Part shown: piece by piece, positions 34,001 through 40,435 of the stretch
Layout of the letters: each line of letters begins with the position of its first letter
Position numbering within the stretch: the first letter of the stretch is position 1
Assembly: GCA_964199315.1 (NCBI GenBank)
Contig: OZ116711.1
Location: 20,460,001-20,524,000 of the forward strand
Direction: 5' to 3'
DNA: 64,000 bases
Source of the DNA: Orbicella franksi
Taxonomy: Eukaryota
Position numbers and translations under genes: made by a program
Notes under the pieces: generated by a model
The model's database searches: none
The model's input: the letters and a program-made list of their open reading frames with translations, nothing else
Told to the model about the DNA's origin: nothing

Positions 34001-36370
34001 GAATTAGACTAGGGTGTTCTAACTTATATAACAGCAGATGTGTGATCTTCCTGTACTTTCAGTCGGTAGTTTTATGTGGTACTGTTTATTATGCTGTACA
34101 AGGTGGTCCTAACTTTTGAGTCTGTGGATGAAACCCTAGTGTGTGACCATTCAAATGAAAGCTGTTGAGCAGTACTTTCATGTGCTACTGTTTATTAAGC
34201 TGTACAAGGTGGTTCTGACTTTTAAGTCTGTGGATGAAATCCTAGTGTGTGACAATTCAAACCAAAGCTATTAAGCAGCCCCAGTGTGGGTCCTATTGAG
34301 AAGTACTTCCATTAGGTACAGCATGAGACATGGTACTACAGCATGCTCTACATACAAGACGATTCTAACTTCAACGTCACGGATGACCATTCCACAAGAA
34401 AAACTACATTATGCTAGAAAACTATTGTTTTGTTTTTAATTTACCATGAAAGAAAGCAGGCTACATAGAGAGTTGGCGCTATAACAGCTTTGGACATTAC
34501 TTTTTAATTAATGATAACTTGGTTAATTCATAGCTAATTGTTGAAAATTTGAAGTCTGTATCTCATTTTTAATCCATATATCACCCCGTATTTTGTGCCT
34601 AATGTCTTGTGTCTACTTTTCGTCCTTGTCACTTCCCGTTTCGATAAGTTGTTTCTATATATTTGTGGGATGCGATTTTTCTTTGAAATGAAATTGCTTT
34701 GATACCAGAGATATTGTTAATCAATCAGACAATCAATCTTTATTTGCACTCACTCTTGCTCAAAATAAGAAATTACAACAATGAAAATATTAAAAGTAAA
34801 AATTGAGTACTAGCTGCCTGGTATAACCACAGGGACTAGCGGAGCCAGGCAGCCAGTCAACATCAGCATCCTGAGGGAGGGCGGTACTCCCAGAAAAATC
34901 GGGTGGGGGTGTGCAGCCCGCTTCCCAAAACCCTTACCCTATTTATGACCAAAATCTGCGATATTCCCTACCCTATTTATGACCTGACCAAAAATTCGAA
35001 ACCCTATTTATGACCTAACCCTTAAATCAAAACCCTGTTTCAGACCTGCGTTATAATTAGTTCCCTAGTTCAGACCAATGTTAAATTACCGTAAACATAA
35101 TTGTGAGAGGCTTGTTGATTTTCTTTTCGATAATGATGAAAAAGTGGCTTCTTCTTAAAAAAAAATACCCATGTCAAGACCAGAGTGCAAAAACAATACC
35201 CTATTTATGACCAAATTGGCCAAAATCAGCTAAAATCGATACCCTATTTATGACCAAAACAGCTGAAAAACCCTACGCTTTGGGGCCGCACATACCTATA
35301 TGGCCCATATAAGGGAGCACCCCCACCCCCGGGATCAGCATTAAATACAATTAAAGTACAGGTCAGCAAGGCAACTGAAGCACAAATGCACACATAAGAA
35401 AGAAAGAAAGAAAGAGGAGGAAAAACGCTATTTCTACGCTATGAAGGAAGTCTAAAATAGTTAAATTTATATATGAATACAATACATAAATATAAGAAGT
35501 GCACGCAATCGCTATGTCAACTAATAGCAAGCTAAACATTAAACTATTAAAAAAACTTGGAAAAGTGACAGAAATTAACAAAATACCAATTTACAGGTAA
35601 ATTGGGAAACAACACAACTGCTAATAAGAACACAAGGAACTAAATATCTTTCACAAGATCGCTTTTTACTGATTCCTTAAAGTTTGAAATAGAGAAGGTT
35701 TTCAAATTTTCACTAATTCAGTTCCATACTTTGGGGCCCTTAAATCTTATGTTGAATATTCCATAATTTGTTCTGACTTTTGGTAAAGTATAGAACATAT
35801 TCGAAGCATTTGTATTATAGTCTTATTGACTTGTGTAAAGAAAGTATCAAACACAGATGGTAGACGCCTATTATGAAATTTATACATAAAGACTGCAATA
35901 CTATAATATAGCTATCGTTATTGTTGTTGTTGTTTTATAACTCAATTTCTATTACTTCTTAGGAACAGGGGGTCTACTGATGGCTTATGCACTTCTTGAC
36001 AAAAAAGACGAAACAAACGAGACAAGCGTGTGTGTATTTGAGAGAGAAGATCGTCTTGGAGGAAAAATCTTTGATTTCAAGTTTACACAAGCACCAGACG
36101 TTGCAGTAGGTAAGCCAAAACGAGTCCTCTGTCGCCATATATTTCGTGTAAGAACTGTTTTATCCCTGTTGTATTCTGGGACGGTCAATTCTTATCTCTT
36201 AGGTAATTAAAAGAACGTTTTCACTGTCACGTAACGAAAAAGTAAATCAAAAACCATTCAGTGGATAAAGTCAAGAAATTGCAATGTTATAGAAGATAAG
36301 TAAAGAAGACGCTTCTCTAAGTTTTACGTCTCTGCGTTTTCCCAAACCTCGGATATTCGTCGAAATGCAA

Positions 36371-36408
<38 letters not shown>

Positions 36409-39400: not shown

Positions 39401-40435
39401 AGCTGTGCTGCATACGATAGCTAACAATGGAGGATGCAGTGATAAGTGGGGGAAAACCCTGAAGATTTCTGCCAAAGAAGTCGACAAAGAACTGAAGCGA
39501 GCTCTGAAGTACAAGTTTCAAAGACAGGATGTGCCAGATCCTTTGGAGACTAAGTACAAGTATTGGGACGAAGGATTTTGGTAAGTAAAATCTGAAAGAG
39601 TCTTCTTTCCCCTCCCCTCTCCTCTGCTAAAACTAATGGACCCTCGCGTATCCTAGGTCATGACTCTGCCTTTTCTGAAGCCGACAACAGCGGTGGTACA
39701 GTGAAATCCCGATTTTTTGAACCTCCAAGGGAAACGAAAATTGGTTCGAAAAATCGGACATTTCGAGAAATTGGCCAATCAGATGTCCTTCCTAAAATAG
39801 CCTCGTAGTTTGACCGCGCGCTTAAATTAGATTGAAAAGATTATCACTGGAAGAGACCCATGTATGGAGGATGTGTTCTCTCAGATCAGTTTCTCTTGAC
39901 TGCATTTAATAGTTTGGAAATCGCCAGGTGTCACCTAACGTGGCTTGAAGTGTAGTCATGTCTGTCTACATTATGCTATGCCTCTTTATCAGCCGCTTAT
40001 GTCAATCAGTGTTTATTTAATTTTATTTGTTTTTTATTTATTTTCTTTTTTATGACAATTGTGTCAGTTTCATTTGCCAGCGCAAATTTCAAGGAGAAAT
40101 GTATAAAATTCTAGTTTGTTTGGTTAGTATCTGAGTAAATCATCCTCCCTCCTCTTACCCCAACCCCCCCCCCTCCCACTAGGTCCTGGGGTCCCCTTGT
40201 TTATGTAGCGAGAATGTAACAACTTATTATTTAATGACGTAGGTTTCTGCAAAAGCCTGGTGCCAACTTCCCCTTATCCACCGTTCAACGATGGGCCATG
40301 CGACCGCTGACCGGACAGGACGTATTCTTGGTGGACAGAGCATTTTATAGTTTCGGCGGATGGCTGGATGATACTATTAAATCATCACTGGATGCTTTAA
40401 AAGAGGGCTGGAACTTAGATTTTACACTTTATTAA
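19043..40435 (+). CDS. Secreted modular protein: signal peptide, 3x H-type-lectin-like, follistatin/Kazal, 3x H-type-lectin-like, C-type lectin, Thr-rich stalk, flavin amine/L-amino-acid-oxidase-like domain
   Basis: Exons: 19043-19127 (MRLGMCLQLSPSFLLFLAILGNITLAVK, signal peptide), 22864-23012, 23253-23504, 23775-23939, 24316-24429, 26618-26743, 27154-27250, 27687-27905, 28339-28715, 29623-29790, 30259-30369, 30637-30760 (+4 lesion), 31423-31513, 31612-31986, 33255-33337 (-1 lesion), 33547-33996, 35963-36109, 37695-37737, 38123-38893, 39380-39580, 40243-40435. All introns are GT-AG with compatible phases. Skipping the two lesioned exons gives a 4134-nt frame (1377 aa). The lectin-oxidase junction is inferred from splice phases only. 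Confidence 0.72.
22157..22532. mobile_element. PIF/Harbinger-like MITE
   Basis: GGCCC.GCGGTCCACACT ... GTGTGGACGGGGC ends with internal ggaggaatttgaaaacg repeats. A second copy lies at ~63330-63721. Confidence 0.7.
22864..27250 (+). CDS. H-type-lectin-like repeats 1-3
   Basis: Repeated pattern V.F...F...P.V.VS..H ... VW(V/L)E.V....F.VC.RE ... (D/N)W.A(F/Y), e.g. VWVQSISTRGFEVCSRE, VWLENVNSGSFEVCIRE, TWVEEVGLTAMRICVKD. This resembles H_lectin (discoidin C-terminal / Helix pomatia agglutinin) domains. Confidence 0.65.
25517..25699. repeat. Long near-perfect inverted repeat (hairpin-type MITE)
   Basis: About 84-bp arms around a 13-nt loop (25601-25613). A third partial arm copy is at ~25905-25965. 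Confidence 0.85.
27687..27905 (+). CDS. Follistatin-N + Kazal domain exon (phase 1-1)
   Basis: DLNPCLDVHCPSFGVCKTFSVHETRCVCYENCPSYHDPVCTANGTTYDNKCWHELYYCRGLENNRVYHPGSCE has the 10-Cys follistatin spacing and a Kazal PVC...TYxNxC motif. Confidence 0.9.
28339..31513 (+). CDS. H-type-lectin-like repeats 4-6
   Basis: SWTENINTKNFTVCAMQ, IWTEDVTKDSFKVCLRE, AWIENKNTSGFRTCVKE. Intron positions and phases parallel those of repeats 1-3. Confidence 0.65.
31612..31986 (+). CDS. C-type lectin domain exon (phase 1-1)
   Basis: CDPGWSYFNDYCY...C...WLGLND...W...QPNNFRGEDCV...WNDVRC...YTCK, the canonical long-form CTLD. Confidence 0.95.
33547..33996 (+). CDS. Thr/Pro-rich mucin-like stalk running directly into the oxidase Rossmann strand (ECGVAIVGG)
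   Basis: One open frame from GDENTKRATTEAGTT to TTIVPSDKTFLECGVAIVGG-G followed by gtaag. Includes a 36-bp internal duplication (PTTTKPPLTT x2). Confidence 0.88.
34868..35333. mobile_element. MITE-like repeat with ccctatttatgacc subrepeats
   Basis: Bounded by GGGAGGG..GTACTCCC and CCCCCGGG. A related copy in the opposite orientation lies at ~60715-61107. Confidence 0.6.
35963..40435 (+). CDS. Flavin-dependent amine/L-amino-acid oxidase-like domain (achacin/aplysianin-A-like), paralogue 1
   Basis: GxGxxG (VAIVGGGTGG), VCVFEREDRLGGKI (GG motif), PRKGMSEF..TL, AAVYEKAWW, DP....Y.YW..GFW, GGWLDDTIKS. The exon structure mirrors paralogue 2. Confidence 0.88.
37038..37197. mobile_element. Short hAT-like MITE
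   Basis: CAGTGGCGGATCCAGG ... CTAGATCCGCCAGG termini. Confidence 0.55.
37800..38040. mobile_element. MITE (TTAAAGGAAC...GTTCCTTTAA)
   Basis: Terminal inverted repeats. A second family member lies at ~54658-54899. Confidence 0.65.

Follow-up and report, generated by a model that had tools for sequence, protein, structure and literature searches.

L-Amino-acid oxidases (LAAOs) and enzymes of their type serve in defence by generating hydrogen peroxide (H2O2), and are known from snails, sea hares, fish mucus and snake venom. The bacterial-type LAAOs are soluble, form oligomers and have neither lectin nor mucin parts. In AncLLysO, R76 is bound to the substrate's carboxyl group and K387 is the O2 site, and neither the R76A nor the K387A variant has detectable activity (PMC8405998); in HTAncLAAO2 the carboxyl and O2 sites are R67 and K322, respectively (PMC10517122). 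In VioA, Y309 binds the carboxylate and pairs with R64. We describe here a gene of the coral Orbicella franksi, paralogue 1 (P1), in which a domain of this family is fused to lectin modules and a mucin-like stalk, unlike the bacterial-type enzymes, and compare it with a neighbouring paralogue 2 (P2). Both genes lie on the forward strand of the window, which is a stretch of 64,000 nucleotides (GenBank assembly GCA_964199315.1, contig OZ116711.1, positions 20,460,001 to 20,524,000); window coordinates are used throughout. We consider it fairly probable, from the residue comparisons set out below, that the P1 domain has ceased to oxidise amino acids and has become a binding or scaffold module carried on a glycosylated stalk. 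By operational definition P1 is a predicted pseudo-enzyme, in that it has lost key residues and yet is intact, expressed and under purifying selection.

P2, which served as the comparator, consists of six exons (49738..54448, forward strand) encoding the motifs GGR, LGAWR, PAFKG, HTMYTDG and IGDAY. Its gene model was assembled by hand and all its boundaries are AG/GT; the protein is 85% identical to an Oculina protein and 98% identical to a protein from a metatranscriptome. P1 has the same exon layout, with 40–66% identity to P2 exon by exon. A sequence-only reading of this DNA had pointed to three motifs at which P1 departs from P2, and all three departures are present at the places that it gave. 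At the carboxylate-Arg site P1 has LGEWN (37697-37711, Asn codon 37709-37711) where P2 has LGAWR (51091-51105), and at the Lys site it has PAFHGAAVY (38757-38783, His codon CAT at 38766-38768) where P2 has PAFKGAAVY (52286-52312, AAG at 52295-52297). In the third, the C-terminal flavin adenine dinucleotide (FAD) motif, P1 has FLVDRAF (40325-40345) and P2 has FVIGDAY (54263-54283); here the Asp-Arg codons (40334-40339) replace G-D/E, so that both residues of the pair are altered and not the Gly alone. Two further differences had been missed, namely HTIANNGG in P1 (39411-39434, Ala codon 39420-39422) against HTMYTDGA in P2 (53168-53191), and LGGK in P1 (Lys codon 36064-36066) against FGGR in P2. 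The N-terminal dinucleotide-binding motifs are present in P1 as VGGGTGG (GxGxxG, split across 33996|35963), VFERE and LGGK. Because every N-terminal FAD motif is intact, the P1 domain probably still binds a dinucleotide.

We note that oxidase exons 2 and 3 are separated by a phase 2 intron in P1 (37737|38123) and by a phase 0 intron in P2 (51135|51665), the latter according to the sole GT-AG solution found. The acceptor of P2 exon 3 lies three bases downstream of another AG, and the junction is derived from the gene model alone; the phase difference would be a case of intron sliding.

The family to which these domains belong is small, comprising only 106 cluster representatives in a whole-library search (E ≤ 0.001). 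A search of the PDB sequences with P1 exon 3 as a single sequence returned nothing useful (E 0.65), and solved structures were reached only by a family profile constructed from 38 relatives outside the P1 clade. The nearest solved structure by profile is AncLLysO (7EIH, E 8e-51), followed by HTAncLAAO2 (8JHE), the Pseudomonas L-arginine oxidase (8T8A/8JT7), the Pseudoalteromonas LAAO (7OG2) and AncLAAO-N5 (7C4K). These bacterial-type matches span E values from 8e-51 to 1e-31, while VioA, MAO, putrescine oxidase and snake LAAO are more distant (E 1e-17 to 1e-26). The AlphaFold model of residues 120-591 of the P1-like transcript protein P0116 has a mean predicted local distance difference test score (pLDDT) of 93.9 and a predicted template-modelling (TM) score (pTM) of 0.92. 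With this model Foldseek returned the bacterial-type LAAOs first, at TM 0.74-0.77 (0.73-0.77 across the named structures), and matched LAAO, VioA and MAO structures at probability 1.0. Both the Pfam match of P1 and the fold of its homologue thus place it in the flavin amine-oxidase superfamily (PF01593 fold). The snake-venom enzyme from Calloselasma rhodostoma (1F8S), which the sequence-only reading had proposed for superposition, has the same fold (TM 0.75 to the homologue model) and shares the GW motif retained in P1; however, it is only 15% identical, its profile alignment is limited to the N-terminal two thirds, and the bacterial-type LAAOs are the closer relatives. Its residues R90, K326, Y372 and G464-W465 we take to be those of the columns discussed here.

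Residue equivalence was established from hidden Markov model alignments together with the numbering used in the papers, and not from the fold-search alignments. In 7EIH, the Arg column of LGAWR corresponds to chain residue 78 and the Lys column of PAFKG to chain residue 389. In the deposited K387A variant (7EII), Ala stands exactly at the Lys column; the numbering offset is thereby fixed at +2, and the two columns represent R76 and K387 of AncLLysO. They also align with R67 and K322 of HTAncLAAO2. The C-terminal motif of P1 aligns with IC-GE-AY of 7EIH. The column that contains Ala in P1 contains Tyr in the four nearest solved LAAOs, and the Tyr lost from P1 is probably the second carboxylate binder, equivalent to Y309 of VioA. 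The sequence-only reading would have fallen had its positions not been equivalent to the catalytic ones; tested by profile alignment to solved LAAOs, the equivalence stands. The GxGxxG...E...GG core is thus common to the bacterial-type LAAOs and P1, as are the WW and C-terminal GW motifs. In place of the carboxylate Arg, the Lys at flavin N5, the Tyr and the G-E that the former keep, however, P1 has Asn, His, Ala and D-R.

These states are characteristic of a clade of P1-like proteins. In the comparisons that follow, counts out of 48 or 49 refer to relatives (representatives) in the wider family outside that clade. The carboxylate Arg is present in 45 of 48 relatives, whereas the P1-like clade has five residue types in this column (Val, Leu, Asn, Gln or Asp). 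The Tyr column contains Tyr in 44/48 relatives and Ala or Gly in all 18 P1-like sequences, and the GGR column contains Arg in 44/48 relatives and Lys in 15 of the 16 P1-like sequences. In the C-terminal FAD motif the acid is Glu or Asp in 43/48 relatives and is replaced by Lys or Arg in 17/17 P1-like sequences. It is this change from acid to base that is informative, rather than the loss of the Gly emphasised by the sequence-only reading; the Gly is indeed lost from P1, but it is a weak marker, being kept in only 33/48 relatives, with Asn, Ser and Cys also found there. The column of the Lys at N5 contains Lys in every other cnidarian member seen, and His, Phe, Ile, Val, Tyr, Asn, Ser or Gln (eight types in 27 sequences) within the clade. 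The position of the P1 His is occupied by Ser in Oculina, by Gln in Desmophyllum and by Phe, Ile, Val or Asn in the Acroporidae. This is the 45th most variable of 454 columns, and yet none of the eight residues that flank it (VPAF_GAAVY) differs in any of the 27 sequences. The Acropora and Montipora sequences have hydrophobic or small replacements: Arg to Val or Leu, Lys to Phe, Ile or Val, and Tyr to Ala or Gly.

The remainder of the domain is well conserved. The P1 clade keeps 29 of the 34 columns with 85% conservation or more among 24 relatives outside it; the 29 include all the glycines of GxGxxG, the β2 Glu, the GG, four Cys, the WW and the C-terminal Trp; GxGxxG, the ribose Glu, the GG-Lys and the Gly-Trp that follows the C-terminal motif are kept clade-wide. 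The five altered columns are the GGR Arg, the carboxylate Arg, the conserved Tyr, one Pro and one Ala. It follows from the 29 retained columns that the changes are more than chance. The motif acid varies elsewhere too: in a Lys-bearing coral subgroup annotated as ‘achacin-like’ or ‘VioA-like’ (P0125, P0126 and locus L015, G000 C3:31398000-31407999), G-S replaces G-D/E while Arg, Lys and Tyr are kept, and the acid is therefore not indispensable in the family.

The substitutions had been presented as a feature of this one gene. They are present in P1, but they belong to an old clade that extends across the stony corals. The O. franksi genome contains ten family members, of which six keep the Lys and four are P1-like. 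The four P1-like copies are 80-91% identical in exon 3, are all open, and all have His in the Lys column together with VDRAF; LGEWN was recovered in two of them, the short exon 2 being unrecovered in the other two. The three P1-like genes other than P1 are intact and lie on the minus strand approximately 200 kb upstream of the window (G000 C14:20236000-20300000; L011-L013, L021-L023). P1-like proteins also occur in Oculina patagonica (P0143, 76% identical to P1, and P0144, 80%), Desmophyllum pertusum, four species of Acropora and two of Montipora. Acropora and Montipora belong to the complex lineage of corals, and Oculina and Desmophyllum to the robust lineage; as the changes are common to both, the P1-like state is very old. 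Maximum-likelihood analysis places the P1-like sequences in one clade (Shimodaira–Hasegawa-like approximate likelihood ratio test (SH-aLRT) support 100) on a long stem, nested inside the Lys-bearing cnidarian genes, with P2 as a weakly supported sister (82). The Nei-Gojobori ratio of nonsynonymous to synonymous divergence (dN/dS) among the four P1-like copies of this genome is 0.30-0.47 at dS 0.11-0.34, compared with 0.24-0.41 for three Lys-bearing paralogues of similar divergence, and the best Oculina matches of P1 and P2 are 80% and 85% identical, respectively. The P1-like copies therefore give no sign of constraint relaxed relative to the presumably active copies.

Members outside the clade provide a contrast. 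P2, the Oculina ‘achacin-like’ protein P0125 and the Nematostella vectensis protein P0149 have the same family membership and exon structure as P1, at 40-47% identity, but unlike P1 they keep the Arg, Lys, Tyr and GGR; the motif acid is kept in P2 (G-D) and P0149 (G-E), and P0125 has G-S. The key-column residues are likewise kept in the Oculina orthologues of P2. Because they keep the catalytic residues, P2, P0125 and P0149 are expected to be active oxidases. In P0149 (565 residues), a signal peptide and a chitin-binding CBM14 domain precede the oxidase domain, which has every catalytic residue; fusion to carbohydrate-binding modules therefore recurs in cnidarians. All four proteins, P1 included, appear to be built for the cell surface or for secretion.

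The P1 gene is intact. Its oxidase exons are exon 1 (35963..36109), which encodes the remainder of GxGxxG, the β2 Glu (VFERE) and LGGK and matches Pfam NAD_binding_8 and Amino_oxidase; exon 2 (37695..37737), which encodes LGEWN; exon 3 (38123..38893), which encodes the substrate-binding domain and the return to the FAD domain (Amino_oxidase, E 1.3e-8); exon 4 (39380..39580), with an Ala codon in the near-invariant Tyr column by translation; and the last exon (40243..40435), whose translation contains FLVDRAF, GGWLDDTIKS and the stop codon. All five are on the forward strand, open and bounded by AG/GT, and the joined frame is approximately 450 residues long up to the stop codon, in agreement with the intact frame and retained GxGxxG and GG motifs reported by the sequence-only reading. 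The FAD fold itself starts one exon before 35963, in the Thr/Pro-rich mucin-like stalk exon (33547..33996, forward strand; Thr, Ser and Pro make up 57% of its first 135 residues), the 3′ end of which encodes CGVAIVGGG; GGGTGG (GxGxxG) is completed across the intron 33996|35963. Upstream of the stalk is a C-type lectin exon (31612..31986, forward strand, phase 1-1, AG/GT boundaries) with a strong Pfam match (Lectin_C, E 1.1e-16) and a predicted sugar/Ca site motif, QPN...WND.

Contigs from four RNA-type runs were placed on 31760-37750. The GT..AG joint from lectin to stalk (31986|33547) was found in three runs from two studies, that from stalk to oxidase (33996|35963) in contigs of two runs, and that between oxidase exons 1 and 2 (36109|37695) in contigs of all four runs. 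Poly-A RNA-seq runs contain exon 3, the exon with the His codon. Since lectin, stalk and oxidase exons are joined in RNA contigs, the ‘lectin-fused oxidase’ is a real spliced message, as had been supposed. An alternative exon 2 encoding Arg was considered and is unlikely, the joint 36109|37695 being the one in all four runs.

Two features of these contigs concern the stalk region. At 33770-33819 of the stalk exon, contigs of two runs lack 48 nucleotides, in frame and inside the Thr/Pro repeat; the ends of the gap are AC..TG and it is therefore not a splice, but looks like an allelic difference in repeat number. At 33960-35360, in the intron between stalk and oxidase exon 1, summed contig depth is very high in all RNA runs, and the contigs have many internal joints and loose ends, which suggests an abundant transcribed interspersed repeat.

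Further upstream, an H-type-lectin-like exon (29626..29802, forward strand) is 56% identical to the H_lectin region of the Montipora protein P0110, and its Pfam H_lectin match (E 0.003) is below the cut-off. A second such exon (30632..30826, limits approximate, forward strand) was located by a tblastn match to P0110 residues 208-272; searched by itself against Pfam it gave no match. The domain order of P0110 is H_lectin, Lectin_C and Amino_oxidase, and a 1321-nucleotide RNA contig extends approximately 755 nucleotides upstream of 31760, its joints in that part not being seen directly. The exon at 29626..29802 probably belongs to the same gene as the P1 oxidase exons. No C-type lectin exon was found in the flanks fetched for the other P1-like copies of this genome; in two of those three copies the stalk is preceded by an exon for a type II membrane anchor, which resembles the N-terminus of Oculina P0144. 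Both forms occur in Montipora, where P0109 and P0133 consist of anchor, stalk and domain, and P0110 of H-lectin, C-lectin, stalk and domain. Given that both architectures occur in the clade, the common theme is a LAAO-like domain located C-terminally at the far end of a mucin-like stalk, and P1 is the lectin-bearing version of it.

On this basis we propose that P1 is an extracellular protein in which H-lectin-like modules and a C-type lectin are followed by an O-glycosylated Thr/Pro stalk and, at the C-terminus, by a domain of LAAO fold. The domain retains the fold and the dinucleotide-binding core (GxGxxG, ribose Glu and GG-Lys). It has lost the Arg and, probably, the Tyr of the carboxylate clamp (now Asn and Ala), the O2-activating Lys beside N5 of the flavin (now His) and the acid of the C-terminal FAD motif (D-R in place of G-D). 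Because clamp, Lys and acid are lost, P1 most likely carries out neither L-amino-acid oxidation nor H2O2 production of the kind expected of P2, and the domain is probably a binding or scaffold module without catalytic function, kept in mucus or at the surface of the coral. We infer each of these attributes, that is, the loss of activity, the retention of FAD, the extracellular location and the binding role. Several observations weigh against this proposal. In the wider family the Lys column contains Lys in only 11 of 49 representatives; as it is missing from the other 38, loss of the Lys by itself would be no sign of inactivity, and the argument against amino-acid oxidation by P1 is, as far as sequence can indicate, the loss of Lys combined with that of Arg and Tyr. 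The equivalence of that Tyr to VioA Y309 comes from conserved order and spacing after the Lys, not from superposition, and the protein modelled was P0116, which is 61% identical to P1, and not P1 itself. The strict conservation near the active-site strands (VPAF_GAAVY and LHTIANNGGC) and the basic residue that replaces the motif acid throughout the clade could each mean a new chemistry and not the absence of one.

The last of these points leads to the main alternative, possible though on balance unlikely, that P1-like domains are flavin oxidoreductases acting on a substrate that lacks the α-carboxylate, such as an amine, a lipid or another hydrophobic compound; the acceptor, too, might not be O2. 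The clade-wide retention of GxGxxG, ribose Glu, GG-Lys and Gly-Trp would fit such an enzyme, as would active-site strands that are invariant except at the formerly catalytic positions, and the hydrophobic or small replacements in Acropora and Montipora would enlarge the pocket and make it greasier. A large outgroup branch of the family, moreover, has Thr or Val in place of the Lys and yet keeps Arg, Tyr and G-E. However, the former Arg and Lys positions vary freely, which is not expected for a defined new active site, and the FAD-motif acid is replaced by a base; to our knowledge, the characterised amine-oxidising members of the MAO, PAO and LSD1 groups keep the Lys. That P1 is still an L-amino-acid oxidase, in which other residues make up for the missing Arg, Lys and Tyr, we regard as very unlikely. 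The fold and FAD core are intact in the homologue model, and a His could in principle hold the water at N5, but this His is not conserved in the clade, and a single R76A or K387A substitution is enough to abolish detectable activity in the nearest solved relative, whereas P1 lacks both residues and the Tyr in addition. Least probable of all is that P1 is on the way to becoming a pseudogene and that its substitutions represent early decay. Several catalytic residues are lost together, and a dN/dS of 0.3-0.47 is not low; nevertheless, the exons are all open with canonical splice sites, spliced RNA occurs in several studies, the four intact copies are constrained like the Lys-bearing paralogues, and the same changes occur in complex-clade and robust-clade corals. 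We therefore reject decay as contradicted by the comparative data. An intact gene whose spliced RNA is present in libraries and which is under purifying selection fits a pseudo-enzyme or a changed enzyme, and in this respect the suggestion made by the sequence-only reading, of a possible pseudo-enzyme with a non-catalytic or new-substrate domain, gains support.

The surroundings of the two genes contain additional modules. Upstream of the P1 lectin exons are more H-lectin-like modules and an exon for a Kazal-type inhibitor (Pfam Kazal_2, E 1e-6), at 23301-23939, 26594-27348, 27602-27925 and 28293-28742, which belong either to P1 or to a separate multi-lectin gene. Between P1 and P2, an exon for a cytoplasmic tail and a type II membrane anchor is present in two copies, which are 86% identical. 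The copy at 47586-47882 probably begins P2, and that at 43967-44233, for which no downstream partner is obvious, could be a remnant or else serve as an alternative first exon.

A precedent for a non-catalytic P1 domain is provided by the chitinase-like lectins, which are enzyme folds that have lost their catalytic residues and act as binding proteins. P1 would resemble them in principle, as an enzyme fold kept under selection after the loss of catalytic residues and put to extracellular use; their fold and chemistry are unrelated to those of P1, and the comparison is one of analogy only. No description of the P1-like clade, or of pseudo-enzymes among the LAAOs, was found in the full-text literature searched, including under Acropora locus names and coral LAAOs, and full-text searches for ‘pseudoenzyme’ together with ‘amino acid oxidase’ found nothing. 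A wider and rather doubtful suggestion is that stony corals have, since before the complex/robust split, displayed a family of ‘dead’ amino-acid oxidases on mucin stalks at their surface, some anchored in the membrane and some fused to lectins, either as receptors that bind ligands or as partners of the active ecto-oxidases encoded next to them. Such partners might restrain or localise the H2O2-producing ecto-oxidases and so form a control layer for oxidative defence at the interface between coral and microbes; the pairing of P1 with P2 is speculation.

Genes annotated as ‘achacin’ occur with C-type lectins in an immune module of Acropora palmata (PMC10212133). If the chemistry of the P1-like clade has indeed been switched off while the clade has been kept and displayed at the surface, expression studies that count these genes as antimicrobial oxidases would be misreading them. 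Corals would then offer a natural pair of active and inactive paralogues, side by side, in which to study the function of a flavoenzyme fold that does not oxidise, and the flavin amine oxidases would add an example to the known classes of pseudo-enzymes.

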